Sequence record: MZ475895.1
Direction: 5' to 3' (one strand)
Length of the DNA stretch: 64,000 bases
The translations under genes and the position numbers were made by a program. This document shows positions 24,676 to 56,445 of the stretch, one piece after another. The notes beneath the pieces are model-generated. The model did no database searches, had not been told where the DNA came from, and worked only from the letters and a program-made list of their open reading frames with translations. Positions within the stretch are counted from its first letter, which is position 1; the number at the start of each line of letters is the position of its first letter.

Positions 24676-24719
24676 GGTCAAAATGACCATTCTCTGCTAT
24701 ATGCTGCCTATGCTATAAT
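24676..24719 (+). promoter_or_regulatory. GGWCAAAAT-box promoter (copy 1)
   Basis: GGTCAAAAT 24676, TGC-TATAAT 24714. Confidence 0.7.
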
Positions 24720-24765
24720 AGTTGCGAGCGCATTGCTCAATACAATCATGCTGAGGAGCATAACA

Positions 24766-25107
24766 ATGAACGCATCTACTTTCGATTTTTCTATCATCTG
24801 CACCGAGAGCTTCAACATTAATGAGCTGAACAAAATCGCCGTTGAGCTGAACAAGCTGATCACTAACTCGCAGATCAAAATTGAAGCCGCAGAGCTTGAT
24901 GATGAAGGCACAGAGTGCATTCTTCTGGCTATCGGCCTCGATGAAGACGGCGAAGAGACTGGCGAGAACGGCTACTCCCTGCATCTGGACAACGGCGACT
25001 ATCAGATCGTATATCTCGGTGTGCCGCATCCTGACTTCGATAAGCACGAACTTGCGACCAGTGACTTCGAGTTGTTCATCAAATCAGTCAACGGCCTTGA
25101 GTTCTAA
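24766..25107 (+). CDS. small acidic early protein (113 aa)
   Basis: GAGGAG RBS; about 24 D/E vs 5 K and no R. Confidence 0.8.
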   Translation: MNASTFDFSIICTESFNINELNKIAVELNKLITNSQIKIEAAELDDEGTECILLAIGLDEDGEETGENGYSLHLDNGDYQIVYLGVPHPDFDKHELATSDFELFIKSVNGLEF

Positions 25108-25127
25108 TCACTAATCTGGAGTCCAGT

Positions 25128-25481
25128 ATGCGCCCTAACGCCGCAGCACATCTCGCCGCATCTCTTGCCTTGTTTGCGAAACGTAACCGTAGAGCAAAAT
25201 TCACTATCTCTACAAAATCGATAATTCAAGCGACTGATATGGGGACTGGTGCCTATATACCTGATCTATTCATTATGCAATTAGACCTAGAGTTGCGTCT
25301 ACGTGGTTACATCCTGATTAAACAGGAGGAGACAAACTACATGATAATGAAAGCTAGACCCCGCAATCATGGCCTTCGCATTTCTTCAAATCATATAGAT
25401 GAATATATGAACCTGCCTCTTGAAGTAGTCGATCTTCAACTCTCTGAGACGTTGGACACAGAAGACACAGAAGAAGACTAA
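25128..25481 (+). CDS. hypothetical protein (117 aa)
   Basis: GGAG RBS. Confidence 0.7.
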   Translation: MRPNAAAHLAASLALFAKRNRRAKFTISTKSIIQATDMGTGAYIPDLFIMQLDLELRLRGYILIKQEETNYMIMKARPRNHGLRISSNHIDEYMNLPLEVVDLQLSETLDTEDTEED

Positions 25482-25490
25482 CACTAATCT

Positions 25491-25533
25491 GGCAGAAATC
25501 GCCGTTGTGTTTAGACGCTCAACGGCATACTAT
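25491..25533 (+). promoter_or_regulatory. GGWCAAAAT-box promoter (copy 2)
   Basis: GGCAGAAAT 25491, TTGTGT-17-TACTAT 25528. Confidence 0.6.
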
Positions 25534-25582
25534 TATGTCTCTAGCGCAATGACGCGCTACAACAACGAAAGAGAGAAACAAC

Positions 25583-25837
25583 ATGAGCGAAGACGTTAAA
25601 GTAACAATCGATTTAGTAGCTGACTTTGTATCACGCACCGAAGTTGTGTTTGAAGATGGTCAATCATCTAATGACTGGCTCGCGCCGTATGATCTGCGCC
25701 TGAACGTAACTGAGCCGCAAGGGCCGAACGGCTACCCCGAAGTTGAAATCGTTGGCCAGCGCGATAACGTCTTGCGCTTCTTTGATGAGCAGATGCCTGA
25801 TAGCGACATTACAGAAGACTCGCTTGAATCTGCCTAA
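25583..25837 (+). CDS. small acidic early protein (84 aa)
   Basis: GAGAG RBS; about 20 D/E vs 5 K/R. Confidence 0.8.
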   Translation: MSEDVKVTIDLVADFVSRTEVVFEDGQSSNDWLAPYDLRLNVTEPQGPNGYPEVEIVGQRDNVLRFFDEQMPDSDITEDSLESA

Positions 25838-25852
25838 GCAACAAACAACACT

Positions 25853-25874
25853 GTGGCGTTACGGCGCCACTTTT
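25853..25874 (+). terminator. intrinsic terminator (UACG loop)
   Basis: GTGGCG-TTACGG-CGCCAC-TTTT. Confidence 0.75.
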
Positions 25875-25896
25875 CTATTTCTGATCTGAGGTCAAT

Positions 25897-26436
25897 ATGA
25901 AACAAAAATTCTTATTCTTGCGCATGAGCCGACACGAGCTGAATCAGCATTTGTTTTTACTTCGTGGCATGAGCCGTGAGCGTCTTGAATCATTCACTGG
26001 CATTATCGCCGTTGTCAAAGACGATACGACGATGGCGAACATCGATGATACTGACCTGTATTATTTCAGCGAAGTAACAGCCGAAGAGACAACATCAGAG
26101 ACGCAACAAACCTGGTGGAACCTGATTCATTACTACGACAATCAGATTGCTATCGGCTCACTCCCACGTATAGAGCCGCTGCTGCCTGACGATTTAGTTG
26201 AGCGCATCAAAACAACTCGCAGCAATCGCTTCTACTACGAGTTCGATACGCAAATGCCAGAAGTATTGGCCACTGTTGATCTTGACCTACACTTCTTACC
26301 GTCTGCCGCTCAGCCTCGTGTGAAGAAGCCTAAAGAAGAACAGCCAGAAGTTAATCCCCTGGCCGCATACACAGTCGAACAACTGTGTGCCGAACTACGT
26401 ACTCGCCTGAGTGCAAAAATCACTATCGAATTTTAA
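25897..26436 (+). CDS. hypothetical protein (179 aa)
   Basis: GAGG RBS; C-terminal LAAYTVEQLCAELRTR helix motif. Confidence 0.8.
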   Translation: MKQKFLFLRMSRHELNQHLFLLRGMSRERLESFTGIIAVVKDDTTMANIDDTDLYYFSEVTAEETTSETQQTWWNLIHYYDNQIAIGSLPRIEPLLPDDLVERIKTTRSNRFYYEFDTQMPEVLATVDLDLHFLPSAAQPRVKKPKEEQPEVNPLAAYTVEQLCAELRTRLSAKITIEF

Positions 26437-26477
26437 TCAACTAGCACAGGGAAGTGCCTCTAACTGAGATCAAAACT

Positions 26478-27083
26478 ATGTTCACCAAAGCATTCTTCTT
26501 CAAAACTAACTACTCTGTATTGGCCGAAGGTGAGTTCGCGCTGCCTGTTGACTCACTGACCTCTCTCGTCAACTCGCGTATTTTCATCTGCATCACAGAA
26601 GACAACCTGCGCTTCGCACTGACCAACATCACTGTGCAGCCGATTCGCAATGGCTTCTTGCGCGTTGGCTTCGAGCCGAAGACTGACGTGAATGCAATCA
26701 CTACTCCAATCATCACGCCTAAAACGATGTGGAGCGAGTATGATTTTGATGCGTGCAGTGTCGAAAACATTCCGTCATTCAATATCAGTACGCATGAAGA
26801 CAAGAACAACGAACAACTGATTGCACTGTCATATGACCTTCGTATGGCTCTCATGCATTATCGTGAAGGCATGTACTGCGTGACCGACATCGTTTTGCGT
26901 CTGCATGAACACGGCATTTTCGTTGTAGATATTGATCAGAATCTCAAGGTTGCTCTCTCGCCTATCGCCGTGCTTAGCGAACGACCTACACATGCGATTA
27001 GTCTGAGCAAAGACAACGGCGTGCTGTCCCGCATTGATGACTTCGAGCTGCCTGATCTCGCTAAACTGATCGTCCTACTGTAA
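26478..27083 (+). CDS. hypothetical protein (201 aa)
   Basis: ATG 26478 after GAGAT. Confidence 0.75.
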   Translation: MFTKAFFFKTNYSVLAEGEFALPVDSLTSLVNSRIFICITEDNLRFALTNITVQPIRNGFLRVGFEPKTDVNAITTPIITPKTMWSEYDFDACSVENIPSFNISTHEDKNNEQLIALSYDLRMALMHYREGMYCVTDIVLRLHEHGIFVVDIDQNLKVALSPIAVLSERPTHAISLSKDNGVLSRIDDFELPDLAKLIVLL

Positions 27084-27135
27084 ACAAACAACTCTAGCCT
27101 CGCATCGTGCGGGGCTTTCTGCTTTGGAGAATACC

Positions 27136-27396
27136 ATGTATCAATATGACCGCGATGAATTGAATGACCTGCCGCTTGACGTGCTGCATGGCGAAGCTGA
27201 AAAGCGTGGCTTGCTCGCTGACCTGGAAGACGATGATGATTGTCCTGACCGTGCAGTGCTGGTGGGCATGATCATTGATGATCAGAACGAGCGCAATGCC
27301 GAAAACGAAGAGGAAGAGCAGCGCCGTCAGATGCAAGATGACGCTGACGATCACCGTCGCATGTTAGACGAACGCGACGGCTCAGACGACTGCTAA
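27136..27396 (+). CDS. acidic protein with HeH/Rho-N-like module (86 aa)
   Basis: ELNDLPLDVLHGEAEKRGL...DRAVLVGMIID; GGAGA RBS. Confidence 0.7.
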   Translation: MYQYDRDELNDLPLDVLHGEAEKRGLLADLEDDDDCPDRAVLVGMIIDDQNERNAENEEEEQRRQMQDDADDHRRMLDERDGSDDC

Positions 27397-27397
27397 C

Positions 27398-27736
27398 ATG
27401 CTATACTCTGGGCAGCAATACGATACACTCAGTCCTGACCAGTTGAATGAGTGTTTCAATCTGATTGAAAGTTGCATGGTGGCCTCTGGCTGTCGTGGCT
27501 TTCAAATAGTGTTATCACCATCTGGTCATGGCGATTGTCGTAGCGTCGTCCACATTCAGCACCCACAGTATGCAGGTCACATTGAGTTCCCCTCAGTTGA
27601 CCGTGATACTTTTCGTGTGACTCTCGTCGCAACACGCGGTTGCTATGACAGCCGCACCGTGTTCGTACCAAATTCAGATACAGCCTATTCAGTGATAGGT
27701 CTGTATCTCTCAAACTTTATAGGGGCTACAAAATGA
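27398..27736 (+). CDS. hypothetical protein (112 aa)
   Basis: Coupled ORF. Confidence 0.65.
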   Translation: MLYSGQQYDTLSPDQLNECFNLIESCMVASGCRGFQIVLSPSGHGDCRSVVHIQHPQYAGHIEFPSVDRDTFRVTLVATRGCYDSRTVFVPNSDTAYSVIGLYLSNFIGATK

Positions 27737-28077
27737 AACGCCGCATTATTCGTATCGATCAGTCAGAGTTCAACGGTGAAGCGCTTGTCTTCCCACCATC
27801 ATTCAACATCACCGGCATTGACGTTGTGGTGCTTGTGACCGTGAAGCACGAAGATTTCGGTGGCTTGAAGTTTCAAGATACCTATCGTGTGAACGAACTA
27901 CGTGTAAGCGAACATACAAATCCCCTGCGTCAGGAGATTGAGATCGTAGAGTACAGCAAACTGCCGAACGATGAAGCAATCTTCACACGACTACTCGACG
28001 TTGATTATTTCGACGACGACATTGCAGAGCGTGACCTGCGTCTGTACGATGCACCGACCACAATCGTCACTGCGTAA
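27733..28077 (+). CDS. hypothetical protein (114 aa)
   Basis: AGGGG RBS, overlap with upstream stop. Confidence 0.7.
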   Translation: MKRRIIRIDQSEFNGEALVFPPSFNITGIDVVVLVTVKHEDFGGLKFQDTYRVNELRVSEHTNPLRQEIEIVEYSKLPNDEAIFTRLLDVDYFDDDIAERDLRLYDAPTTIVTA

Positions 28078-28085
28078 TAATCTTT

Positions 28086-28112
28086 AGGGCTGCCATCTTG
28101 GTGGCCCTTTTT
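28086..28112 (+). terminator. intrinsic terminator
   Basis: AGGGCTGCC...GGTGGCCCT-TTTT. Confidence 0.75.
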
Positions 28113-28117
28113 GTTTT

Positions 28118-28125
28118 CTGTAAAC
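28118..28125 (+). promoter_or_regulatory. CTGTAAAC motif
   Basis: Directly after terminator, 35 nt before ATG 28161. Confidence 0.5.
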
Positions 28126-28160
28126 TACACGCACAATCCCAACAATGCGAGAACGCACAG

Positions 28161-29439: not shown

Positions 29440-29738
29440 TCTACGAATGGGTCCACGACCTTGAAGGTAACGAAAGTCAGAATCTGCCTATCTTGCCTCC
29501 AGACATTTATGCGTATGTGCGCGATGCCGTCACTGGCGCACGTACCCCAATCAACTTTGAAGGCCGCACCGAGTTACAGCGTCAAGACAAGAAAGTCATA
29601 GGCGTTGTCTATTGGTCTAATCGAGCTAATCTGATTTCATGGACGGGCGTCGAGCGCTTTCGTTTTACGCTGTATGTAGTACGTGCCGCACATAAGTCAA
29701 ATGAGCAACATGAGGAAGCTCAAGTCTGCACTAATTAG
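29427..29738 (+). CDS. hypothetical protein
   Basis: Fills gap; start uncertain. Confidence 0.55.
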   Translation: MGDIIYEWVHDLEGNESQNLPILPPDIYAYVRDAVTGARTPINFEGRTELQRQDKKVIGVVYWSNRANLISWTGVERFRFTLYVVRAAHKSNEQHEEAQVCTN

Positions 29739-29780
29739 GCTGAAATAGCTATCGCGCATAATACGCTCCTGTGCTATACT
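29738..29780 (+). promoter_or_regulatory. GGWCAAAAT-box promoter (copy 3)
   Basis: GGCTGAAAT 29738, TGTGC-TATACT 29775. Confidence 0.65.
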
Positions 29781-29825: not shown

Positions 29826-30257
29826 ATGACTATCAACAAGTTTGACTTTCAAACACTGACTACTCCAGAACAATGGTCTTCCGCTGCTTGGGGTTTCTAT
29901 CGTGACTTCGCAGATCGTTTGCGTGATACTATCGGCCGCGATGATCTTTACTTCGACATTGAAGTTGATGGTGGCAGCGATAGCGACCAAGTTGCCGAAG
30001 AGATGGTCGATGATGGTGTGATTCATTTACTCATCTCGTACAAAAACGAAGATGAAGATTTCATTAACGCCAAAGGCGTCTGGCTGTTCCAAGTCACTTA
30101 CCCAACAGAAAGTGATATTGACGGTGAGTGGTCTAACCGCTTCGTGGTCGATGTGCAGACCGTTGATATGGAAATCTTAGAGCTGGTGGACTTTGATAAC
30201 GGCCACCCACGTTTGCTTGAAGATATTGCAGCGCGGGTTAATCACTGGTTAGTGTAA
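29826..30257 (+). CDS. acidic early protein (143 aa)
   Basis: AAGGAG RBS; about 32 D/E vs 10 K/R. Confidence 0.8.
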   Translation: MTINKFDFQTLTTPEQWSSAAWGFYRDFADRLRDTIGRDDLYFDIEVDGGSDSDQVAEEMVDDGVIHLLISYKNEDEDFINAKGVWLFQVTYPTESDIDGEWSNRFVVDVQTVDMEILELVDFDNGHPRLLEDIAARVNHWLV

Positions 30258-34270: not shown

Positions 34271-34271
34271 A

Positions 34272-34478: not shown

Positions 34479-35016
34479 ATCTTTCGGTGTGTACCTGACG
34501 TTCATTCTGCGCCATCGCCCGCAAGACATTGGCCTTGCAATGGACACTCAGGGTTGGGTATCAGTTCCTGACTTGCTCGAACGTGCTCAATATAAGAAGC
34601 AGCCAATCACGTTAGAGATGTTGCGTGAAGAAGTTGCTACTGACGGTAAAGGCCGCTTCCAGTTCAACGCTGCCCACTCTCGCATTCGTTGTGTGCAGGG
34701 ACATTCAGTTGAGCATGTGATTCTTAACCTCAAGCCGTACACGAATCACAATGACCCGCTGTATCACGGAACGGCCAGCAAGAACGTTGCGTCTATTCTT
34801 GCGCAGGGAATTCTTCGCGGTAAACGTAAACACGTCCACATCGCAACCAACACCGCTACTGCTAAGCAAGTTGGTCAGCGTCACGGTGAACCTGTTGTAT
34901 TTGAGATCGACACGTATGCCATGATTACTCACGGCTACAAGTTCGAACAAGCCGAGAACGGTGTGATTCTTATCGAGCACGTCCCATCCCGATATCTAAG
35001 GTTGGTAGAGTTATGA
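34471..35016 (+). CDS. kptA: RNA 2'-phosphotransferase (Tpt1/KptA)
   Basis: LTFILRH.P..IGL.MD.QGWV, DGKGRF, RIRCVQGHS, LYHGT, RKHVH, VGQRHGEPVVFEID, NGV.L...VP..YL. Confidence 0.93.
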   Translation: MAKSFGVYLTFILRHRPQDIGLAMDTQGWVSVPDLLERAQYKKQPITLEMLREEVATDGKGRFQFNAAHSRIRCVQGHSVEHVILNLKPYTNHNDPLYHGTASKNVASILAQGILRGKRKHVHIATNTATAKQVGQRHGEPVVFEIDTYAMITHGYKFEQAENGVILIEHVPSRYLRLVEL

Positions 35017-35420
35017 CTGAACAACGAATGAGTTATTGCGGTTCACGTTACATCCGTACATCTTCCGGCAGGTGGTATTTGCTTTTCGAACGAGCGGCCT
35101 GCTTGTGCATCAATCGTCATGGTACCCAGTACTGGCGAGCAGGTACGCAAGTGTGGAAAGATGTGTCCATCTCAACTCGCGCCACTTTGGAAAACGAGTT
35201 TATCAGTCGTACCTGCAAAGATTTCAGGGAGTCGAAGTCTGCGTACAACAGATGGGGCAAGGTGATTCGTACACTCATTCTAGGTGCAGGTACTAACGAG
35301 CATCTCCACGATTTAGCGTCTATTCTTGAGTCACTGAGACAGACGCATATAGGGCGCAAGCAACAGCAACTGCGCACTACATTGGATGAAATAGCTATTC
35401 AGTCAAGAACCACCCTATGA
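35013..35420 (+). CDS. hypothetical protein (135 aa)
   Basis: ATGA overlap. Confidence 0.7.
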   Translation: MTEQRMSYCGSRYIRTSSGRWYLLFERAACLCINRHGTQYWRAGTQVWKDVSISTRATLENEFISRTCKDFRESKSAYNRWGKVIRTLILGAGTNEHLHDLASILESLRQTHIGRKQQQLRTTLDEIAIQSRTTL

Positions 35421-35426
35421 TATAAT
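35384..35426 (+). promoter_or_regulatory. GGWCAAAAT-box promoter (copy 4)
   Basis: GGATGAAAT 35384, TATGA-TATAAT 35421. Confidence 0.65.
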
Positions 35427-36842: not shown

Positions 36843-37106
36843 ATGGCAGTAGGTTTCGCCAAAGATGATGACGTGTCCAACACCGTCGAAACAAACGTGC
36901 TGAATGAAATCGACCGCGCTCGTTCTGAGTTGCGTGGCGCTGGTAGTTCGCATTGTATCAACCCTGACTGTGGTGCAGAGATTCCACTCATGCGCCGCGT
37001 AGCAATGCCGAACGCTCGCTACTGCGTTAGCTGTCAAGCACACCACGACGGTACGCCGACTGCTGGCTACAATCGTCGTGGTTCCAAAGATTCTCAACTG
37101 AGGTAG
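36843..37106 (+). CDS. ybiI: DksA/TraR-family C4 zinc-finger protein, YbiI-like
   Basis: CINPDC..IP..RR.AMP.ARYCVSCQ; N-terminal MA.G.A.DD.V and C-terminal GYNRRGSKDSQLR as remembered for E. coli YbiI. Confidence 0.85.
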   Translation: MAVGFAKDDDVSNTVETNVLNEIDRARSELRGAGSSHCINPDCGAEIPLMRRVAMPNARYCVSCQAHHDGTPTAGYNRRGSKDSQLR

Positions 37107-40058: not shown

Positions 40059-41039
40059 ATGCGTTTTGGTTTCGCCTGCAAACTGCTTGATGACAACGGT
40101 AAACAACCGTACACGAACAAGAGCCTGAGCTATGCTCACTTCTCCAAGCTGTCTCAGACAGAGCAGCAAGAAAAGCTGGTGCTCGTCGTCACACACAATC
40201 TGACCTCGTTACTTGAGATGATCAGACACGTTGGTCGTCTGCGTACAGACTTGCGCATGTTTCGAATCACAAGCGAGCTACTTCCGCTGTTCACGCACCC
40301 GATGGTCACACGCATGTATCTCCAAACACACATGACCAAACTGACAGACACGATGTTGGCAACATGTGGTGCAGCGGCTAGACGTCTTGGTGTTCGACTG
40401 TCATTCCACCCTGGTCAGTTTACCGTGCTTGCGTCTGACCGACCCGACGTTATGCTCAACTCGATTAACGAAATGGAATATCACGCCTACTGTGCGCAGG
40501 CTATGGGCTACGGTCGTAAGTTCCAAGATTTCAAAATCAACATTCATTTGAGTGGTCGTCGTGGTGCCACAGGTTTCAGAGACGCCTACTCTCGTCTAAG
40601 CGATCATTGTCGCAAGATGATCACGGTAGAGAATGACGAGTACACTTCCTCGATCGAGGATTGTCTTGAGCTTGCCGACATTTGTCCTGTTGTTCTCGAC
40701 ATTCACCATCACTGGGTAATGACTAACGAATACATTCAGCCGACCGATGATCGTGTTCAACGTGTCATTGACTCGTGGCGAGGCGTTCGCCCTGTTGCGC
40801 ATTACTCTGTGTCACGCCCAGAGTTCATACCGTCTACAGGTCTGCCTGATCAGAACAAGCTAGAAGCAAAGTCTGCCTCGCTGCGTGCTCATTCTGACTA
40901 CTACCACAATGACAGCGTAAACGAGTGGGCCCTCAGCTTCGAGCAATTCGACCTGATGTGCGAGTCTAAAGCGAAGAATCTAGCACGCACGAAACTAGCC
41001 CTTTTTAAGGGCAACTCTGCACAAATATGGTCAAAATAA
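40059..41039 (+). CDS. uvsE: UV damage endonuclease (UVDE/UvsE)
   Basis: RFGFACK, MFRITSELLP, RLSFHPGQFTVLAS.RPDV..NSI.E..YHA, INIH, TVENDE, PVVLDIHHH. Confidence 0.93.
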   Translation: MRFGFACKLLDDNGKQPYTNKSLSYAHFSKLSQTEQQEKLVLVVTHNLTSLLEMIRHVGRLRTDLRMFRITSELLPLFTHPMVTRMYLQTHMTKLTDTMLATCGAAARRLGVRLSFHPGQFTVLASDRPDVMLNSINEMEYHAYCAQAMGYGRKFQDFKINIHLSGRRGATGFRDAYSRLSDHCRKMITVENDEYTSSIEDCLELADICPVVLDIHHHWVMTNEYIQPTDDRVQRVIDSWRGVRPVAHYSVSRPEFIPSTGLPDQNKLEAKSASLRAHSDYYHNDSVNEWALSFEQFDLMCESKAKNLARTKLALFKGNSAQIWSK

Positions 41040-41072
41040 GGCTTGTTTTAGAAGGTGCCCCTATGATACACT
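41029..41072 (+). promoter_or_regulatory. GGWCAAAAT-box promoter (copy 5)
   Basis: GGTCAAAAT 41029, TATGA-TACACT 41067. Confidence 0.7.
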
Positions 41073-41123
41073 GATTACGAGCACTGTATGCTCGTTTCTA
41101 CTGATTCAAGAGGATAAGACAAT

Positions 41124-43234: not shown

Positions 43235-44446
43235 ATGGCTATCATTTCCGCAGAAGAACAAGCGCGTCTGGACTCACTTGCTGCTATCGTAGCTAAGATG
43301 TGGGCACAAGGCGGCCCTGCTGTGCGTGATGCTCTGCGCTACGTTGCTAACCAAATGCTGAGCGACGAGCATTCATTCCTGTACGAAGAAGTGCCTGGTG
43401 TAACGCCTGACATTGAATCTGTCTACCACCATCTGAGCGATTTGCCACTGACGGGTATGACCCGCATCGTGCGCAATCCTGACTTGATCAGCTCGCTTGA
43501 AGATCTGATGAACAAAAACGAGCGTGAGATCTTCGGCTCTGCCGTACGTAACAGCGCGTACACTATGTTCAAACTTTTACCGCAGAATGAAACCTCGGTG
43601 TTCTGCCATCCAGGTAAAGGTGCTACCTCTCGCACCCAGCCGCGTCAGGTCGCTGAAAGACTGCATCGCGGTTTAAGCTACATGTTGTCCGTGCGCGGTC
43701 TGGACGCGTATATCAAAAAGGCTGATAATCAGATTCGCTCTTACGGGCATACTCGCCTAGCCTCTCTGGTAATCGCAGTCGCAGTCAAAGGCGAACGCAG
43801 TGTTGCTACTCGCATCGTACCTCTGTGGCGTATGGACGATCACACGGAAGAGGTAGGCACGATTGAACTTGATCAGGATATCCCGAACGATCAGCCCGCT
43901 TACTCAACTGCGGTAGAAACCGATAGTCAGGTTTGGCAGAAGTTCGATGCAGAACACCTTATCGCTATCCTGCTCAAGCATGAGAATCATAGCGCGTCTA
44001 AGTTACGTGGCATGGACCGCGAAGAATTAGACGATACCTATGAAGCCTTCGTTGATGACTATCTTGACGACAACCAAGATGAGGAAGAAGATGAAGGGTG
44101 GGACGAAGAAGAGGATGAAGACGAAGAAGATGCCTTCTGTCCTGAAATCCCTTCGCGCCTAGCTCTGCCTATTGAACTGCCTATTGTTAATCTCGAACGT
44201 CCGAAGTTGGACATTCGTCCAGGTATGCGTTTGAAGACCAAAAAGCCTAAACAGTCTCATATTCAGAATATTCTGATTGATCCAGTTTGGCACGCAGTTG
44301 ACCTACAAGACGAGAACAATATTCATTATTTCAGTGTGTCTATTGTTGCCCGTGATACTGTCGGTCATAAGGCTATTTCAGCTTCGCCGCTTGAAGCACT
44401 GACTATCTCCAACGTGCTGATGCAGATCGCTGAAACTAACACTTAA
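43235..44446 (+). CDS. hypothetical protein with acidic tract (403 aa)
   Basis: GAGGA RBS; DDNQDEEEDEGWDEEEDEDEED. Confidence 0.8.
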   Translation: MAIISAEEQARLDSLAAIVAKMWAQGGPAVRDALRYVANQMLSDEHSFLYEEVPGVTPDIESVYHHLSDLPLTGMTRIVRNPDLISSLEDLMNKNEREIFGSAVRNSAYTMFKLLPQNETSVFCHPGKGATSRTQPRQVAERLHRGLSYMLSVRGLDAYIKKADNQIRSYGHTRLASLVIAVAVKGERSVATRIVPLWRMDDHTEEVGTIELDQDIPNDQPAYSTAVETDSQVWQKFDAEHLIAILLKHENHSASKLRGMDREELDDTYEAFVDDYLDDNQDEEEDEGWDEEEDEDEEDAFCPEIPSRLALPIELPIVNLERPKLDIRPGMRLKTKKPKQSHIQNILIDPVWHAVDLQDENNIHYFSVSIVARDTVGHKAISASPLEALTISNVLMQIAETNT

Positions 44447-44448
44447 CT

Positions 44449-44491
44449 GGACAAAACAGCGCTTCTTAACGAGGCGCTTTTCTGCTATAAT
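44449..44491 (+). promoter_or_regulatory. GGWCAAAAT-box promoter (copy 6)
   Basis: GGACAAAAC 44449, TGC-TATAAT 44486. Confidence 0.7.
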
Positions 44492-48768: not shown

Positions 48769-49914
48769 ATGACTAATTCATCTCTGCCTTTCGTTTCTTG
48801 GTTCGAACGTGACAACTACTTTGATGACATGATTGAGCGTCTCGACCTCAAACGTCTCTGGGGCTATGTTGAAAAGAACAACGTGGTCAACAAGACTAAA
48901 TACAATCTGCCTAACCTCACTGCCTACCACACCACCGAGCACATGAAAGAAGTTGCGTGCATTGCGTCCTCTCTACTGCACCGCGAGTCGAACCACGACT
49001 GGCAGATTCGTCTGATGGAATATCCGTTAGTCGTCGCGTGCCTTTTCCACGATATGAATCACAGTCTGGGTAAATATACTGATGACGTGAACATCAACCA
49101 TGCGCTCGTTGCGTTTAATGACTATCTTAATACCAAAGATGAGAATCAGGGCAACGACAAGCTGCTGTTTGAATATCGCGATCAGATCTGTGCACTGATT
49201 CGTTGCACCCAATTCCCGTTCCATGACTCACGCAAGCCAACTAACCTGATGGAACGCTGCATTCGTGATGCGGACATTTTATACGGCCTGCAGGATGACG
49301 CAATGCCTGCTGTTGTGATTGGTCTACTGGATGAAGTGAACGTTCGTTTGGCTCCAGAAAGCAAATACTCCACCGCACAGTGGGTGGCAGGTCGCATTGA
49401 GTTCCTGTTGTCGTGCGAGATGTTCACCGAAACTGCTAACAAAATCTTCTGCGATGCTCTTAGCACCAACAGCCCGAACTATCACGGTAATGTGCTGCAA
49501 TCTTTCCTTGAGATGAAAGTGCGGCTGATCGATGTTCGTGCAGATAAGCTACGTGGTGGTGATGTTATCTGGACAGACACAGAGAACGACTCAGCCTATC
49601 GTCCACGCCAAATCAGAAACATCGGCAACGAAGCGCTGCCAGACGTTAACGTGTATTTCACTGACGGTCAGGCTTGCGGCTATCGTAGCGGGGAGACCGT
49701 TCAGTTGCTGCCTAACACTGAGATGGTGAAGCTCGAAGACATTGTAGTTGGCGACATTATTCTTGAGCCTGCACAGGGTGAAGTGAAGCGCGATCTGCAT
49801 CGCATCGTAAACATCGCTAACGGTGGCCTGCATGAAAGCGTGCTCTATCTCGAAAATGGCGGTGTGTTTACGTCAGCGCCCAAAGGCCGTGTCTGTCGTG
49901 TAGTCAGCAAATAA
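48769..49914 (+). CDS. HD-domain phosphohydrolase (PDEase-like) with two C-terminal beta repeats
   Basis: YHTTEH, CLFHDMNH, IRDADI; repeats VRADKLRGGDVI...VYFTDG and VKLEDIVVGDII...LYLENG. Confidence 0.75.
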   Translation: MTNSSLPFVSWFERDNYFDDMIERLDLKRLWGYVEKNNVVNKTKYNLPNLTAYHTTEHMKEVACIASSLLHRESNHDWQIRLMEYPLVVACLFHDMNHSLGKYTDDVNINHALVAFNDYLNTKDENQGNDKLLFEYRDQICALIRCTQFPFHDSRKPTNLMERCIRDADILYGLQDDAMPAVVIGLLDEVNVRLAPESKYSTAQWVAGRIEFLLSCEMFTETANKIFCDALSTNSPNYHGNVLQSFLEMKVRLIDVRADKLRGGDVIWTDTENDSAYRPRQIRNIGNEALPDVNVYFTDGQACGYRSGETVQLLPNTEMVKLEDIVVGDIILEPAQGEVKRDLHRIVNIANGGLHESVLYLENGGVFTSAPKGRVCRVVSK

Positions 49915-49916
49915 CT

Positions 49917-49959
49917 GGACGAAATAAGGCTACTCTGCTTAGGCTGCTTATGCTATAAT
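49917..49959 (+). promoter_or_regulatory. GGWCAAAAT-box promoter (copy 7)
   Basis: GGACGAAAT 49917, TATGC-TATAAT 49954. Confidence 0.7.
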
Positions 49960-50001
49960 ATGCGTGAGCAGTCATTTATCATATTCTCAAGGGAGAAACG
50001 T

Positions 50002-50676
50002 ATGTACAGATCATTCAATCCAGATATGACAGGCAAGTTTTTCGTAATCGAACACAGCTTTAAAATTCAAAACATCTTTTGGATGGGCTTCAAAACGATT
50101 GATGGCAGAGAAATCATTTTGCCTATTCCTGCACGTGACGCACAGAGTGGTTATCGTGTTGGCCGAGAAGCGGCCTTCCCTGTAATTCGCTCCAACATTA
50201 ATACGAACGCTGACCCAGATTCAGACGTCTTGTTCGAACATACGGTAGGCATCTTGCATATGCGAGCACGCCGTTTCGAAACTCAGATCATGACGCGCAC
50301 TGCCGTCTCTTATACTGGCTTGCTGCCTGACGTCCGTATGGCAAAAGAGGGCGAGCGCTATGTTACGCCTCTTAATTCGTTTGAAGGTCCTCTTATTCCT
50401 GCACTGAGTCGTCGTCTTACTCATTTCTGCGAAGAAACGCCGATGCTGCACAGTTCTTTCCTTGAGACGTTCTCTGACGAAGAGTGGTCGAAACTGAAAG
50501 CCGCACCTGTATCAATCAATGATTGGCATAGTGTTTCTAACTCTATTCGTGAGGGTAAGCTAAAGCCTACAGTTAATATCCCAGACTTCTATCTGTCTAC
50601 CCGTAAAGAAGATACGACAATACCGTCAGACGTTATCGAATATTACGCCGAAGCTAACGCACGAGGTGACATATAG
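50002..50676 (+). CDS. hypothetical protein (224 aa)
   Basis: GGGAG RBS before ATG 50002. Confidence 0.8.
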   Translation: MYRSFNPDMTGKFFVIEHSFKIQNIFWMGFKTIDGREIILPIPARDAQSGYRVGREAAFPVIRSNINTNADPDSDVLFEHTVGILHMRARRFETQIMTRTAVSYTGLLPDVRMAKEGERYVTPLNSFEGPLIPALSRRLTHFCEETPMLHSSFLETFSDEEWSKLKAAPVSINDWHSVSNSIREGKLKPTVNIPDFYLSTRKEDTTIPSDVIEYYAEANARGDI

Positions 50677-50909: not shown

Positions 50910-50911
50910 TT

Positions 50912-51762: not shown

Positions 51763-51799
51763 TTCATTTTGGCCTTGCGGGGCCAATTAGGAGAACATC

Positions 51800-53191
51800 A
51801 TGATTTTCGATCTGCGCAAAAGTTTGGCCATGGTTCGTACCGTAATCGATGACCAAGTAATCTATAACTTCTACAACATGATTGGCCGCGATATGCAACT
51901 GCCCGGTACTACTCTCAAAGAGATTATCGACGTGCAGCGTAAGGGCGAACTGTGCACCAACATCATGTGGGGTACTCAGAAGATGGAGTATCGCACACTC
52001 AGATTCGATGAGCGTGGTGATCTTCTCTTAGACGTGACCGTTGGTCCGCATTGCTACGCACGGCTCTCTTACGATCAGATTGAACACTATGGGCGCAAAG
52101 AGTTTAAGGCTATTAACTGCATCGAGATCGATAGCTACCTCGCCCGTGACATTAGAGCGCATCTTCGCGCAGTGGGCCAAACTGAGCCTAAGCTCGAATG
52201 GTATGACAACGTGTCGGATGATGAACTGAAGGACGCTCTACTTTCAGTTGGTCACATGGGACCTCTGGCTTATGAAGGTAAATCTCGTAACCAGTTAGAG
52301 GACATGTTTGAGAAATTCCAGCGTAAGCACGATGCAGAATACAAGTACACGCACGCGCATATTGGCTTAGACCCAGACGAAAAGCTGCCTGCTGATTTGT
52401 ATGAAGATGAGGCACGCTCAATCACTCGTCGTTCTTTTGCTCCTCAGAAGACTGTCGATATGATGATCACTGAGATCTCAAACGTGATGCGCATGTTCGA
52501 TATCTGGGATTCAGCGCCGACATCCGAGACGCATGAGTGGTCAATGCAGGAGGCGTACATGGCCTTCTATAACAGCTTAGTGATTGATAGCGATGGCAGC
52601 CGTCTGCGTGAACTGAAAGATAATCCACAGTTCGCTATCAACTTCATCTACGGCATGGCGGCAGACCTGAATTGGATTCACATCAACGAGATGACCGAAG
52701 ACTATCGTGGCTCGGTTGTGAATCGCATCCTGCAGGAGATTGCTGTTGAGATCAGCACCTCTGATGATTACTGCACGACGGAGCACGGCATCGCTCTTAT
52801 TAAGAAAGAAGAAGAGACAGAAGAAGAGGAGGAGGATGCTTCTGAGCCCGTCTCCATCGAAAAGAAAAAGAAGAAAGGCTTCCCGGATATTCGCTCAGTA
52901 GAAGAGGTGAACTATGACGCACTGCATATCATCGAGATTACATACAAACTGCCCAAGCAGCCTAAGCTGCGCACTAAGCTAGACGTACTGCAATCTCGTG
53001 AGTGCTATCTTGAGCACTTCTTCGGTTGTTTGAAAGAAAATGATTGGCATAGATTAGACAATATCACTAATCTTGACCTGCGCCGTATTGTTGGTGCTGT
53101 TACTAAATCTAATGGTGGTAGATTCAGCCACAACGCCCTGTTAAACATAATTAAACGTGCAGCTAAGAAACTGGCTGCCACTGAGTTCTAA
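51800..53191 (+). CDS. hypothetical protein (463 aa)
   Basis: AGGAG RBS; internal EEETEEEEED/KKKKK block. Confidence 0.85.
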   Translation: MIFDLRKSLAMVRTVIDDQVIYNFYNMIGRDMQLPGTTLKEIIDVQRKGELCTNIMWGTQKMEYRTLRFDERGDLLLDVTVGPHCYARLSYDQIEHYGRKEFKAINCIEIDSYLARDIRAHLRAVGQTEPKLEWYDNVSDDELKDALLSVGHMGPLAYEGKSRNQLEDMFEKFQRKHDAEYKYTHAHIGLDPDEKLPADLYEDEARSITRRSFAPQKTVDMMITEISNVMRMFDIWDSAPTSETHEWSMQEAYMAFYNSLVIDSDGSRLRELKDNPQFAINFIYGMAADLNWIHINEMTEDYRGSVVNRILQEIAVEISTSDDYCTTEHGIALIKKEEETEEEEEDASEPVSIEKKKKKGFPDIRSVEEVNYDALHIIEITYKLPKQPKLRTKLDVLQSRECYLEHFFGCLKENDWHRLDNITNLDLRRIVGAVTKSNGGRFSHNALLNIIKRAAKKLAATEF

Positions 53192-53224
53192 CCGCTATTA
53201 TACCTAACATTGTAGGGAACCAAA

Positions 53225-53647
53225 ATGAATTTCAATCCAAACATCATTGTTGTTGATCGTGTTGTTGTCATGGCCACCAAAGAGACCACAGACAAGTGGG
53301 CTGTTGCTGCAAAGCAAGATCGTGACAACGCACAGTTCGGTATGGCTTTATTGCACGCGGAGCTTCAACGCAAAATCAGTAGCACGCTGCGTAACGCCAA
53401 CCCTGAATCGATGTTCCGTCCAGAGATATTCTGGGCGGACTACGGCCCGCTCTCCGTTAGCGGCTTCATGTATATTGAGAGCAGTGCGGACGAAGAAGTG
53501 TTGAATCAGGCAGATGACCGCGATTACCTGTGCCATCTTGAAGCGATCAAAAACATCGCCGCATCTATGGGACACACCGTTGTTATTCAGCGTGTGAAAG
53601 CCCAGTTCCCTATTGTTGATACTCGCGTACCTGTTGCTTATGCCTAA
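53225..53647 (+). CDS. hypothetical protein (140 aa)
   Basis: AGGGA RBS. Confidence 0.75.
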   Translation: MNFNPNIIVVDRVVVMATKETTDKWAVAAKQDRDNAQFGMALLHAELQRKISSTLRNANPESMFRPEIFWADYGPLSVSGFMYIESSADEEVLNQADDRDYLCHLEAIKNIAASMGHTVVIQRVKAQFPIVDTRVPVAYA

Positions 53648-53657
53648 GAGGTGACCT

Positions 53658-53954
53658 ATGTCTGAACAAACTCAATTGCCTGGCCAAGTCGTTATCGTTT
53701 GTGTTATGCAGGAATCTGATTCTTTCATGGGTCAGAAGTTTGATGGCTATGTGTACTTGCTTAATCCAGAACACAAAGAGATGTTTGAACGTCACCTGCA
53801 GGCGCACAAAAGTCGTGAGAACTATTCACACATTATCAGCCACGCTAATCACTATATAACTAGCACGGGCTTCGATGCGCTTCATGCTGCTATACGCAAA
53901 GATGCAAACAGACCCTGGCTGTGGTCAGATACTGATTACACGATAACTGCATAA
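53658..53954 (+). CDS. hypothetical protein (98 aa)
   Basis: GAGGT RBS. Confidence 0.75.
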   Translation: MSEQTQLPGQVVIVCVMQESDSFMGQKFDGYVYLLNPEHKEMFERHLQAHKSRENYSHIISHANHYITSTGFDALHAAIRKDANRPWLWSDTDYTITA

Positions 53955-53958
53955 ATCT

Positions 53959-54001
53959 GGACAAAATAGAGGTAGCTAGAAAAAGCTGCCCCTGATATAC
54001 T
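53959..54001 (+). promoter_or_regulatory. GGWCAAAAT-box promoter (copy 8)
   Basis: GGACAAAAT 53959, TGA-TATACT 53996. Confidence 0.72.
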
Positions 54002-54054
54002 AAAAGCGTAGCTTGTGCTGCGCTTTTTTACTTTCTGTCTGAGGAGACAACAAA

Positions 54055-54510
54055 ATGAAACCAATCAAAGCAACTGAGGCTGATAAAGCGCTTCAAAACG
54101 AATGTATGGACGCTGTTGCTCAGTGTATTATCCTGAACACACCCGACTGGCGCGATGTAGCGATTGCAGGTTTGCGCCTGTATCTGGTTGCAGCAAAGAT
54201 GAGCGGCGCGGAAATCCCGTGTATGCAATTCGAACATAACGGCAAGCCGTGCCGTTTGTCGTTCAAGATGAACCTTGTTGATGAAGGCGAAGAGTTCACT
54301 CCGAACGAAGTGAACCAAGCGCACCAGCAAGAAATGATCGAATGCATTCTTGCTAAGACCGAAGCGCTCGGCGGTTACAGTTACTTTGATTTGTTCGTTT
54401 GCTCAGGCCGCCTATTTATGATTGGCTTCGACGGTATGGCCGACACCGTTCCTGCTCTGATGTTCCGCTCAGACAAAAAGAACTACCGCGTTAACTTGAT
54501 CAACGGATAA
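54055..54510 (+). CDS. hypothetical protein (151 aa)
   Basis: GAGGAG RBS. Confidence 0.8.
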   Translation: MKPIKATEADKALQNECMDAVAQCIILNTPDWRDVAIAGLRLYLVAAKMSGAEIPCMQFEHNGKPCRLSFKMNLVDEGEEFTPNEVNQAHQQEMIECILAKTEALGGYSYFDLFVCSGRLFMIGFDGMADTVPALMFRSDKKNYRVNLING

Positions 54511-54513
54511 GCT

Positions 54514-54696
54514 GTGAAGACCACCAACGACCTGATTAAAGAATTAAAGCAACATCGTGTTATCATCATTGAAGAACACGACAAGCATATTCTGCCTGAC
54601 CTGACATTCGCCCTGAGTTGCTTATGCATCGATCATACTAAGCGTGTGGTCGAAACAAAGCGTAGTGCTCAGGCAACCAAAATCAAACTCGCATGA
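54514..54696 (+). CDS. hypothetical protein (60 aa)
   Basis: GTG start, fills gap. Confidence 0.5.
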   Translation: MKTTNDLIKELKQHRVIIIEEHDKHILPDLTFALSCLCIDHTKRVVETKRSAQATKIKLA

Positions 54697-54703
54697 GGTT
54701 ACT

Positions 54704-55141
54704 ATGAAATTTGATCAAGCACCAACGAAAGCACAACTCGTGCTGCTGGCCCTCGCTCTCGAATCCGTTCTCCTCTCTATGGAGAAAACGTTTATCAACC
54801 GTAATCTGCTGGAGCAGTTACTTGCGAAGTACGGCATCTCGTTTAACGATCTGAAAGAGTTGCGAGAGTACGGCGAAAAGCATTCCGCCATCGGTACCAG
54901 CGTTGCTCAAGTTATGGAGATAGCTGCCTTGCATGTGGCTCATCTGAAAACAGAACCTGTGCCTGAATACAGTCAAGACGACCTTGATCTAATTCGCGTA
55001 GAATACGAGCCAATCGATACGTCTGTCCTACGCCAGGGCGCTGTGAATGATGGGGTTATCACAGTGCAGCAAGCAGCCACTTTTGAGCGCGATCAGATAC
55101 TGACTGCTATTCTTGAGTACCGACTGCGCTCAGAAGCATAA
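54704..55141 (+). CDS. hypothetical protein (145 aa)
   Basis: GAGGT RBS before ATG 54704. Confidence 0.75.
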   Translation: MKFDQAPTKAQLVLLALALESVLLSMEKTFINRNLLEQLLAKYGISFNDLKELREYGEKHSAIGTSVAQVMEIAALHVAHLKTEPVPEYSQDDLDLIRVEYEPIDTSVLRQGAVNDGVITVQQAATFERDQILTAILEYRLRSEA

Positions 55142-55145
55142 ATCT

Positions 55146-55188
55146 GGACAAAATCGTGGTTGTAGCAAAAACCGTCCTATGTTATAAT
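55146..55188 (+). promoter_or_regulatory. GGWCAAAAT-box promoter (copy 9)
   Basis: GGACAAAAT 55146, TTGTAG-17-TATAAT 55183. Confidence 0.75.
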
Positions 55189-55194
55189 AGAGAT

Positions 55195-55279
55195 GTAGCG
55201 TAGACGTGAGGTATGCGCTATAAATTGAATGACGCGTTTTTGCTTGACTGTAAGGTAGCGGTATCTTACAGTCCTTTTT
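55195..55279 (+). ncRNA. candidate small RNA / leader attenuator (about 85 nt)
   Basis: Promoter, 5' hairpin, then GACTGTAAG-loop-CTTACAGTC-CTTTTT; no ORF. Confidence 0.4.
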
Positions 55280-55397
55280 CAAGTGGCTTCGAAGTTTGAG
55301 GCTTCTTGCGAAAGGTCAAATGTACCTTTGAGCGTTTTCGGATTTACGCGGTTTTCACCGACTGCGCTCTCACTTTAAACCGCAAAGGAAATACATC

Positions 55398-56219
55398 ATG
55401 CCAGAAGCACGCAAACCTCGCCCAGCTGATCGTTTCGCTAAAGCCCGTGCAGAGAAAAACTCACCGGAGCGTCAAGATGCGGCAGCCCAGCGCACGTATA
55501 AAGACACTCCGCCTAAATCTGTTCAGGTGAAACTTGATGCTGTGGCAGCTTCTAAGAAGAAAGTTTCTCGCGGCCCCAAGGCCTCTCGTCCACGTCAGTC
55601 GCCTGCTGTTGACGCAGCACCAAAGCCTCGCATTCGTGATGAGGAACGTGTGTACAATCTCGTACACATGATTCTCTCTGCGTGGAAAGCCGATGCAGAA
55701 AACGCGGCAGCAAGTGTGGGAATCATTAAAGTGTCTCGTCGTAAGATTGAGGGTGCGTTACGCGATCTCAAGAATACGCGCTTCACTAAAATCCCAGGCT
55801 TAATCAATGACGTGCTTGTCTACAATGAACTGGTAGCTGAGTTCGGACAGTGGGTGTACGTCGAGCACGACAGTCCTGATTGGATTTTTGTGCGCCTGCC
55901 TGAAAACAGCACGCCTGTGATTCGCGCTGACATTAGCTATGCCAAGACGGGTGAAACTTCCACGTCTGTTTCGACTTCTAGTGAAGTTCTGCTGAAAGAT
56001 CTTAGCGAAGACGAAGAAGATGAGATCCCCGAGAATGTCGAGTACGACGATGCGGACGAGACTGACGAAGACGAAGAGGAGCCGTATGACTACAGCGCTT
56101 GGTCTCTGCGTGACCTGCAGGAGTATGCGAAGCGCTATGACTTCTTGCAGCCCGACACTGAGGGGTTTGATGATCGCGAGAAGTTGATAGCAGCCATCGA
56201 GCTGGGGGAACAGCACTAA
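55398..56219 (+). CDS. basic-N / acidic-C protein with terminal HeH-like module (273 aa)
   Basis: AAGGA RBS; R/K/P-rich N-terminus; EDEEDE...DYSAWSLRDLQEYAKRYDF...DREKLIAAIE. Confidence 0.8.
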   Translation: MPEARKPRPADRFAKARAEKNSPERQDAAAQRTYKDTPPKSVQVKLDAVAASKKKVSRGPKASRPRQSPAVDAAPKPRIRDEERVYNLVHMILSAWKADAENAAASVGIIKVSRRKIEGALRDLKNTRFTKIPGLINDVLVYNELVAEFGQWVYVEHDSPDWIFVRLPENSTPVIRADISYAKTGETSTSVSTSSEVLLKDLSEDEEDEIPENVEYDDADETDEDEEEPYDYSAWSLRDLQEYAKRYDFLQPDTEGFDDREKLIAAIELGEQH

Positions 56220-56229
56220 GCACAAATAT

Positions 56230-56273
56230 GGACAAAATAGTGGTAGCATCTAAAGCATGACCTGTGCTACACT
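56230..56273 (+). promoter_or_regulatory. GGWCAAAAT-box promoter (copy 10)
   Basis: GGACAAAAT 56230, TGTGC-TACACT 56268. Confidence 0.7.
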
Positions 56274-56279
56274 ATAGAT

Positions 56280-56334
56280 CGAATGCCTTGTAGTTTTTTG
56301 ACTGTGAGTTACTTTCCGGCTCACAGTCCTTTTT
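56280..56334 (+). ncRNA. candidate stand-alone small RNA (about 55 nt)
   Basis: Promoter copy 10 followed by GACTGTGAG-loop-CTCACAGTC-CTTTTT; the next gene has its own promoter. Confidence 0.45.
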
Positions 56335-56402
56335 AAAGTGCTCTCCCAAGAACGCTTTAAAAAGCACAGACTGCCTGCGCTTTTGATAGACAGCATAAAT
56401 CT

Positions 56403-56445
56403 GGACAAAATCATGGTTGTATCAGAATGCTGCCTGTCATACACT
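56403..56445 (+). promoter_or_regulatory. GGWCAAAAT-box promoter (copy 11)
   Basis: GGACAAAAT 56403, TTGTAT-17-TACACT 56440. Confidence 0.72.

Follow-up and report, generated by a model that had tools for sequence, protein, structure and literature searches.

The sequence analysed here is a window of 64,000 nt (sequence record MZ475895.1; one strand, 5' to 3') that carries, between positions 24666 and 56445, eleven copies of a promoter-like unit in which a conserved upstream box lies at a fixed distance from a -10-type hexamer. The window is 100% identical to the Erwinia amylovora jumbo phages pEa_SNUABM_14 and pEa_SNUABM_7 (Megablast, 20 kb tested), which belong to the genus Snuvirus and have genomes of 264-266 kb; further Erwinia phages, together with Dickeya phage AD1, are related to it at ~75% identity. 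A previous inspection of the letters alone, hereafter the sequence-only reading, had reported eleven boxes, each with a hexamer resembling TAYAMT 37 or 38 nt further on, and all eleven are present as described, the distances for copies 1-11 being 38, 37, 37, 37, 38, 37, 37, 37, 37, 38 and 37 nt. The copies are listed below with the score of each against a position weight matrix (PWM) and, where it helps to place them, the adjoining gene or open reading frame (ORF).

24666..24719, plus strand: promoter copy 1, GCACTAATAA-GGTCAAAAT ... CCTATGC-TATAAT, hexamer 24714-24719, PWM score 47.1; precedes the gene starting at 24766; orthologues at AD1 4330, Alexandra 6283 and Y3 2811.
25481..25533, plus strand: promoter copy 2, ACACTAATCT-GGCAGAAAT ... 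TACTAT, hexamer 25528-25533, PWM score 24.9; the weakest -10, without TGn; spacer hairpin GCCGTTG..CAACGGC; precedes ORF 25583..25837.
29728..29780, plus strand: promoter copy 3, GCACTAATTA-GGCTGAAAT ... CCTGTGC-TATACT, hexamer 29775-29780, score 41.2; precedes ORF 29826..30257.
35374..35426, plus strand: promoter copy 4, GCACTACATT-GGATGAAAT ... CCTATGA-TATAAT, hexamer 35421-35426, score 43.4.
41019..41072, plus strand: promoter copy 5, GCACAAATAT-GGTCAAAAT-AAGGC-TTGTTT ... CCTATGA-TACACT, hexamer 41067-41072, score 49.6; directly 3' of a UvsE-like endonuclease gene, with a 5' stem-loop next to it at ~41077-41095.
44439..44491, plus strand: promoter copy 6, ACACTTAACT-GGACAAAAC ... TTTCTGC-TATAAT, hexamer 44486-44491, score 42.4.
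49907..49959, plus strand: promoter copy 7, GCAAATAACT-GGACGAAAT ... CTTATGC-TATAAT, hexamer 49954-49959, score 52.2; precedes the gene at 50002.
53949..54001, plus strand: promoter copy 8, GCATAAATCT-GGACAAAAT ... CCCCTGA-TATACT, hexamer 53996-54001, score 50.1.
55136..55188, plus strand: promoter copy 9, the best-matching copy, GCATAAATCT-GGACAAAAT-CGTGG-TTGTAG ... CCTATGT-TATAAT, hexamer 55183-55188, score 52.5.
56220..56273, plus strand: promoter copy 10 (box at 56230), GCACAAATAT-GGACAAAAT ... CCTGTGC-TACACT, hexamer 56268-56273, score 50.9; no ORF before copy 11.
56393..56445, plus strand: promoter copy 11, GCATAAATCT-GGACAAAAT-CATGG-TTGTAT ... CCTGTCA-TACACT, hexamer 56440-56445, score 48.6; precedes a gene of 529 aa (56507..58096).

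The box had been given as GG(A/T)CAAAAT; six of the eleven copies carry it exactly (0.79 matches expected for GGWCAAAAT; 0 of 100 shuffles reach six), and the other five depart from it by one or two bases (GGCAGAAAT, GGCTGAAAT, GGATGAAAT, GGACAAAAC and GGACGAAAT). The composite pattern CAAAAT-N24-27-TGNTAYAMT gave five matches against 0.00 expected and none in 100 shuffles. All copies lie at gene boundaries, as had been noted, in one case with the box overlapping the 3' end of the preceding ORF, 35013..35420, but the description of the downstream genes as small does not hold throughout, since their products span 33-529 aa. Scanning the window for Rfam families and tRNAs gave no matches.

To place the eleven copies in a genome, the whole 265,635-bp sequence of pEa_SNUABM_7 (RefSeq record NC_061451.1) was scanned on both strands with a two-block PWM built from 31 sites of three phages. 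This genome-wide motif scan, which the sequence-only reading had suggested as a check, recovered the same eleven sites (scores 25-52) and two variants (26-27), with nothing further at a score of 12 or above; the maximum in shuffled genomes was 7.6-10.6. The two variants had been missed by a first, single-block PWM, which was overfitted, and were recovered by a listing of TGnTATAAT together with the two-block PWM:

beyond the window end, plus strand: two variant sites, GCACTAAG-N-TGGACAGA..., scores 26-27, before topoisomerase II genes, with perfect TATGnTATAAT/TATACT.

All 13 sites are on the plus strand, co-directional with the genes, and fall at record positions 210.7-261.1 kb, in one 50-kb segment. 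The eleven-site feature is real: it is not a product of chance, and it is limited to one segment of the genome. Over-representation of k-mers under a maximal-order Markov model was uninformative for the box and exposed instead a TTTACAGAT/CTGTAAA motif, which is taken up below.

A consensus was derived by aligning 57 sites from six phages, with the hexamer numbered -12 to -7. The conserved unit comprises AA(-65/-64), GCA-A-W-A(-59..-53), T-GG-N-C-R-AAA-T(-50..-41), T-W-G(-35..-33), T-R-TG-N, TAYAMT and a 5' stem-loop. Conservation reaches ~17 nt upstream of the box as AA-N-T-N2-GCA-Y-A-W-A-N2-T, with A-65 (67%), A-64 (79%) and T-62 (74%) furthest out, followed by a distal block of G-59 (79%), C-58 (100%), A-57 (100%), A-55 (91%), W-54 (100%) and A-53 (74%). 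In the box itself, T-50 (72%), G-49 (100%), G-48 (89%) and C-46 (65%) are followed by R-45 (100%), A-44 (98%), A-43 (100%), A-42 (98%) and T-41 (81%). Beyond it, G-39 and G-37 stand at ~65%. The A-rich patches at -57..-52 and -45..-41, plus the AA at -65/-64, make up an A/T-rich element at -40 to -60 as in UP elements.

Downstream of the box, the earlier statement that there is no conserved -35 was correct insofar as no copy passes a canonical -35/-10 scan and none of the eleven passes a 4-of-6 test of the -35; a remnant nevertheless persists at a 17-bp spacer as T-W-G (T-35 98%, W-34 89%, G-33 67%), and all eleven window copies have T as the opening base of the -35 hexamer. The canonical scan detected none of the eleven sites, its totals being at or below shuffle expectation, and these are therefore not ordinary -35/-10 promoters. 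The hexamers are all of the TAnnnT type (TATAAT in five, TACACT in three, TATACT in two and TACTAT in one), with T-12 at 79%, A-11 at 82% and T-7 at 84% across the 57 sites, values blurred by the mixture of 37- and 38-nt spacings. An extended -10 is evident despite the same blur (T-15 70%, G-14 65%, T-17 63%) and is followed by an A+T-rich discriminator. TRTGN, said to precede the -10 in most copies, does so in seven of the eleven, the shorter TGN in nine, and GCTGCC(T/C), said to be frequent there, occurs in three only. The distance of 37 or 38 nt holds in all window copies and in nearly all other sites, with one site at 36 nt, and such rigid spacing points to a protein that touches the DNA in register with the polymerase. 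The proposal of a single promoter-like class is supported, its members combining an extended -10 of host type and a poor -35 with an upstream element that is conserved and keeps a fixed helical distance.

The region after the hexamer is also structured. Its first 32 nt fold much better than shuffled sequences (mean z -2.5; 77% of the 57 sites below -1.5) with stems that differ among copies (GAGC..GCTC, AGCG..CGCT and others), so that a 5' stem-loop belongs to the unit; it probably protects the mRNA. A universal hairpin between box and -10 was also considered and set aside, with weak support overall (mean z ~-0.9; 37% of sites), such hairpins being real in a subset. There, the spacer contains a terminator-like hairpin with a T-run (window 44458-44478, AD1 27069, Alexandra 29941, Yoloswag 39077 and JA13 38881), an arrangement allowed by the lack of constraint on the spacer and on most of the -35. 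The individual structures of the window are as follows.

44458-44478, plus strand: terminator-like hairpin in the spacer of copy 6, AGCGCTTC..GAGGCGCT followed by TTTTCT.
54002..54033, plus strand: 5' stem-loop directly after promoter 8, AAAAGCGTAGC-TTGT-GCTGCGCTTTT then a T-run; identical or near-identical in AD1, Alexandra and Y3.
55246..55279, plus strand: strong intrinsic terminator, GACTGTAAGG..CTTACAGTC followed by T5, z -3.1, ~50-85 nt downstream of promoter 9.
56300..56333, plus strand: paralogous terminator after promoter 10, GACTGTGAG..CTCACAGTC followed by T5, z -3.4.

The presence of hairpins in some spacers and after the hexamer could suggest that the units are RNA-level processing or termination signals on read-through transcripts rather than promoters. 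We regard this as most improbable: the fixed 37/38 nt between non-complementary blocks, the TGnTATAAT and the T-W-G at 17 bp are features of DNA and polymerase, the upstream block itself shows no significant fold (mean z -0.3), and no Rfam match was found. The paralogous terminators within 50-85 nt of promoters 9 and 10 (GACTGTRAG..CTYACAGTC followed by T5) stand as an observation of their own; their stems show compensatory changes in AD1, Alexandra and Y3 and have no Rfam match. From this arrangement, promoters 9 and 10 are predicted to give short conserved RNAs of ~55-85 nt, or an attenuated leader, over window 55195-55282 and 56280-56336. The terminator at 56300..56333 is predicted to end a transcript of ~55 nt from promoter 10, and the one at 55246..55279 would either cut transcripts short or act by attenuation in a leader ahead of the gene 55398..56219. 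The 120 nt from this first terminator to the gene at 55398 are also conserved in AD1.

The same class was found in related phages. Ten sites each, syntenic and with similar inter-site distances, are present in Alexandravirus AD1, Alexandravirus Alexandra and Sasquatchvirus Y3, and a further ten in Yoloswag (Yoloswagvirus) and six in Salmondvirus JA13, nearly all at 37 nt. When two orthologous intergenic regions, those of copy 5 and copy 8, were aligned across five genera, the box, TTG and TGnTAnACT were conserved and the 5' hairpin and Shine-Dalgarno sequence (SD) also peaked, whereas the spacer diverged. These data support conservation of the class as positional orthologues in at least five phage genera and in phage NCTB. 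An exact-pattern scan of IMG/VR added, beyond isolates of the clade, one true relative, a 268-kb metagenomic contig; the ~50 single matches elsewhere in the scan are attributable to chance.

This positional orthology bears on whether the copies are duplicated or mobile regulatory cassettes, spread by recombination, whose box has no function of its own. Such an origin would account for repetition within a block of small variable genes and for the resemblance of the last three copies (boxes at 55146, 56230 and 56403) and their terminators to local duplications, and it has a model in the PeSL cassettes of T4-type phages, composite repeats of an early sigma70 promoter and a stem-loop located between small variable-region genes (PMC4122927, PMC2839356). 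The ten sites shared by Snuvirus, Alexandravirus (two species) and Sasquatchvirus are, however, positional orthologues at similar intervals and therefore old and stable rather than mobile, and the spacers are wholly different between copies whereas specific box positions are invariant, which indicates selection on the box and argues against homogenization. We consider this origin quite improbable. The likeness to PeSLs lies in the repetition of a promoter with an adjacent stem-loop, here in 13 copies; in PeSLs the stem-loop is upstream and marks sites of indels or recombination, whereas here it is downstream, at the 5' end of the transcript, a spacer terminator occurs in some copies only and the sites hold their positions stably from genus to genus, being syntenic at similar intervals in four genera.

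Variation among the phages is concerted within lineages. GGAC, GGTC and GGCT occur in Snuvirus and Alexandravirus, GTCC in all six sites of JA13, GGTC in nine of the ten sites of Yoloswag and GGCT in most sites of Y3. In the distant phage NCTB (UvsE 41% identical, 42% G+C), six sites at 37 nt follow CTTTTTTATC-NN-G-GTACAAAA(T/C)-N5-TATA...TTTTGC-TATAAT, keeping the proximal half (G..C-AAAA), T(-35) and TTTTGC-TATAAT, with a T-tract, CTTTTTTATC, in the distal half and not GCAYAAAT. Across the clade including NCTB, then, the proximal half, T(-35), TGn and hexamer are conserved, and the distal half is conserved in A/T-richness only, as expected for contacts by the C-terminal domain of the polymerase alpha subunit (alpha-CTD) or for curvature.

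No RNA polymerase subunit is found among the RefSeq annotations of pEa_SNUABM_7, and an 'RNA polymerase sigma factor' is annotated that corresponds to window 12165-13214. PaBG, Lu11, NCTB, AD1, Alexandra, Y3 and Yoloswag have been described as jumbo phages without a polymerase and with a sigma70-like factor (PMC7412058; group 2.2 of PMC7824862), and the host core enzyme is thought to serve group-2 jumbo phages (PMC7824862, PMC7412058); the clade is therefore expected to depend on host RNA polymerase. Two genes of the window bear on polymerase function.

12165..13214, plus strand: phage sigma70-family factor, homologue of gp244, phrog_17569; context, not a promoter component.
36843..37106, plus strand: DksA/TraR-type zinc-finger protein, PF01258 (2.3e-10), phrog_54, within the operon of promoter 4.

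The second of these may modulate host RNA polymerase, and together with the A+T-rich discriminators it would fit a shift of host polymerase towards phage promoters.

With the host sigma70 optimum at its -10/TGn, the class most plausibly has the host holoenzyme as its reader, and we favour, with moderate confidence, its interpretation as early promoters that would be recognized by host sigma70 polymerase through a UP-like upstream block and by the host alone. The extended -10 (T-R-TG-N-TAYAMT) would be contacted by sigma regions 2 and 3, the vestigial -35 (T-W-G, 17-bp spacer) would contribute little, and the upstream block of 20-25 bp would compensate for it, its A-tracts near -43, -54 and -64/-65 lying on one helix face at what would be the contact sites of two alpha-CTDs. 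The result would be 'uber' promoters in the style of T4 that could seize host polymerase as soon as the DNA is injected. Each would head an operon of ~1-9 kb, the operons together making up a 50-kb block in which small genes predominate; a stable 5' stem-loop would open most transcripts, and some spacers would house the terminator of the upstream operon. The sequences themselves show the architecture of the unit, its copy number, strand and position, its constant spacing, its conservation through the clade and its 5' hairpin; host sigma70 use, alpha-CTD contact and early timing are inferred.

Several observations weigh against a host-only reading. The class is restricted to a single 50-kb segment, as a regulon might be, and its upstream block holds more information than typical UP elements. 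The UP consensus of Estrem et al. 1998 reportedly runs -59 nnAAAWWTWTTTTnnAAAAnnn -38; the invariant G/C positions C-58, G-49 and G-48 fall where this consensus has T, and the majority base matches it at ~9 of its 15 specified positions, the mismatches lying at -49..-47 (GG-N) and -41 (T). All six sites of Dickeya phage JA13 have T at -48, and AD1, infecting the same host strain, keeps G; a concerted lineage-specific change of this kind is easier explained by a phage-encoded protein reading the box. The parallel with T4 is also weakened by the 'RNA polymerase ADP-ribosylase' gp209, whose match to PHROG 832 covers the last 150 of 1480 positions only, and which showed no Pfam match above threshold and PDB sequence matches to helical-repeat proteins. 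We consider this annotation (NC_061451.1 174379-174930, minus strand, outside the window) doubtful.

A phage-encoded or virion-injected DNA-binding protein may accordingly be the reader of the box, acting as a class I-like activator from ~-45/-55 or in later shut-off, in which case the class would be a phage-controlled delayed-early or middle regulon and not a host-only immediate-early set. The invariant non-A/T positions and high information content, the G at -59, -49 and -39 with its 10-bp period, the confinement to one segment and the tracking of phage phylogeny rather than host by the box variants (JA13, Yoloswag, Y3) would all suit such a protein, and there is precedent in T4, where a phage factor replaces the -35 at middle promoters (PMC2988021). 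No candidate DNA-binding protein was identified, however, with no helix-turn-helix matches among the proteins tested; NCTB does not keep the sequence of the distal half; the block is placed, and its A-tracts are arranged, as in alpha-CTD sites; and no other host-type promoter class was seen that could make the activator first, canonical -35/-10 matches in the region being at or below chance. We therefore judge a phage reader possible but rather unlikely. In a more specific form, which we consider doubtful, the box (GCA-A-W-A-N3-T-GG-N-C-R-AAA-T, -59..-41) would be the site of a clade-conserved protein, possibly delivered with the DNA, that docks host sigma70 polymerase at -35-less promoters. 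If so, it would represent a takeover mechanism distinct from MotA/AsiA of T4 that acts from the position of a UP element, and co-evolution of protein and site would have left its mark in the replacement of G by T at -48, seen in every JA13 site.

A reader of another kind, the phage's own sigma70-family factor acting on host core polymerase, had been suggested by the sequence-only reading. Single-sequence Pfam and PDB searches of the annotated sigma gave no match, and its assignment comes from profile and fold alone: its homologues carry PF04542 (Sigma70_r2), its profile matches SigA region 2 (E 1e-3), its AlphaFold model (predicted local distance difference test, pLDDT, 81) matches E. coli sigma70 chains, and profile alignment shows that the aromatic Y..WW motif of region 2.3/2.4 is retained. 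The protein is a genuine sigma70-family member, and the retained Y..WW could read a TA-containing -10. That it reads the box class is nonetheless improbable: the -10/TGn consensus is the optimum of host sigma70, the box, 28 nt from the hexamer, is too distant to serve sigma region 4 as a -35, and two other sense-strand motifs are better candidates.

The first of these, a CTGTAAAT-type motif of the form (A/T)(A/T)(A/T)CTGTAAA(T/C)A, occurs 58 times in NC_061451.1, 56 of them sense to the local genes. CTGTAAA(T/C)A often lies just past a terminator, 30-50 nt ahead of the start codon. Among the loci directly downstream of it are the gene of the sigma itself, the clamp loader and the SSB/UvsX region. 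In the window it is found at these positions.

770, 7283, 12123-12142 (two copies before the sigma gene), 13214, 17499, 38149, 42351 and 60064, plus strand: CTGTAAA-type motif.
5279-5288, minus strand: CTGTAAA-type motif.

The same sequence as CTGTAAAT is annotated as a 'putative middle/late promoter' in the RefSeq record of Lu11, and the CTGTAAA-type motif is likely to be a phage-specific (middle/late) promoter. The second motif is (G)CTAATTT, which many structural genes have 25-40 nt ahead of their starts and which is sense in 19 of 21 cases, its sites being in the minus-strand structural block outside the window (for example, upstream of gp157, gp143, gp122, gp191, gp192 and gp149); it may be a late promoter. 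No box-class site was found in 100 kb of the 280-kb genome of Pseudomonas phage Lu11. Since Lu11 shares the phage sigma and CTGTAAAT but showed no box-class site in those 100 kb, the most plausible target of the phage sigma is the CTGTAAAT or CTAATTT class rather than the box class, and the Lu11 pattern fits a host-dependent box class set against a phage-sigma-dependent CTGTAAAT class. A nearly identical terminator hairpin, GGGTGGCTTCGGC(T/C)GCCC followed by a T-run, is used at least six times in both gene blocks of NC_061451.1 (19069, 35930, 106462, 124483, 135294 and 146637, all outside the window), often directly before a CTGTAAA motif.

The box was also compared with known promoter systems. 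The MotA box of T4 has a TGCTT core, is centred at -30 and lies 11-13 bp from the -10. The analogy with T4 middle promoters drawn in the sequence-only reading extends to the combination of a phage-specific box with a host -10 (often with TGn) and no consensus -35, but fails for the box: at T4 middle promoters the MotA box replaces the -35, whereas here the box is centred at -45 (-45/-50), 28 nt from the hexamer, has an unrelated sequence without the TGCTT core, and the vestigial T-W-G persists. No homologues of MotA or AsiA are annotated in NC_061451.1, no dedicated search having been made. A sigma54 promoter has GG at -24 and, 10 nt from it, GC at -12, and its transcripts start ~12 nt downstream; it was rejected for the box, as no GC lies 10 nt past the GG and the conserved TGnTATAAT 37 nt downstream would be left unaccounted for. 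Comparison by eye with binding sites of Fis, IHF, CRP, DnaA and PhoP gave no convincing match to the box.

The E. coli TGn and Gram-positive TRTGn ('-16 region') promoters share with the class the TG at -15/-14, T-17, a good -10 and a poor -35, but have no counterpart to the long upstream element at a fixed distance or to its 13 repeats in one genome. UP elements such as that of rrnB P1 resemble it in their location at -60 to -40, A-tracts near -43/-54 and fixed helical phase, and differ in having a T-tract where GG stands at -49/-48 here and in a much lower information content. The closest parallel is with T4 early promoters, which are organized as UP/-35/TGn/-10 with extra conserved positions (PMC2988021). 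Their reader is the host sigma70 RNA polymerase, either unmodified or modified by Alt. In both cases a phage without its own polymerase has many copies before small early genes, each with a host-type -10 and TGn, an A/T-rich conserved segment at -40 to -60 and extra conserved positions (PMC2988021). In the present class, in contrast, the -35 is cut to T-W-G, a 5' stem-loop is part of the unit, the upstream block has its own consensus with invariant C-58, G-49 and G-48, and no convincing Alt-like enzyme was confirmed. The class is a lineage-specific variant of strong T4-type early promoters, not a new kind of system, and the earlier suggestion of an undescribed regulatory system is overstated given this parallel in architecture (PMC2988021). 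As a promoter class it does appear to be undescribed: neither a description nor an annotation was found in the literature and records searched, although an earlier mention in the Y3 or Lu11 genome papers is possible.

Taken together, the sites provide a first sequence-level transcription map of an almost unstudied clade (Snuvirus, Alexandravirus, Sasquatchvirus, Yoloswagvirus, Salmondvirus and NCTB), several phages of which are under development against fire blight and soft rot. The map defines ~13 early operons and suggests a programme of three classes (box/TGn-10, CTGTAAAT and CTAATTT). Furthermore, the 57 natural variants of one fixed-position upstream element offer a test bed for replacement of the -35 by alpha-CTD or a phage factor, and the units, which are compact and probably strong (promoter, 5' stabilizer and SD), are possible parts for use in Enterobacterales. 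Predicted start sites would also correct some gene starts. The longest ORF after promoter 7, for instance, begins at 49960, upstream of the predicted transcription start at ~49966, and the RefSeq start matching 50002 would fit promoter 7 better than the ATG at 49960.

Some further observations concern individual genes. No loci related to that of the 529-aa protein downstream of copy 11 were found in IMG/VR. The product of 55398-56219, between promoters 9 and 10, has 273 aa with a basic N-terminus and a very acidic C-terminal half, and residues 232-266 show a weak SAP/HeH-like motif (Ish1, E 0.009, under the Pfam cut-off); the protein is present in Snuvirus and Alexandravirus and absent at the same position in Y3. 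Upstream of the early block, window 5598-6683 encodes a PD-(D/E)XK (Cas4-like) nuclease, labelled 'CRISPR/Cas system associated' in the record. The 'endonuclease' at 40059-41039, adjoining promoter 5, is a UvsE-type UV-damage endonuclease as judged from its relatives.

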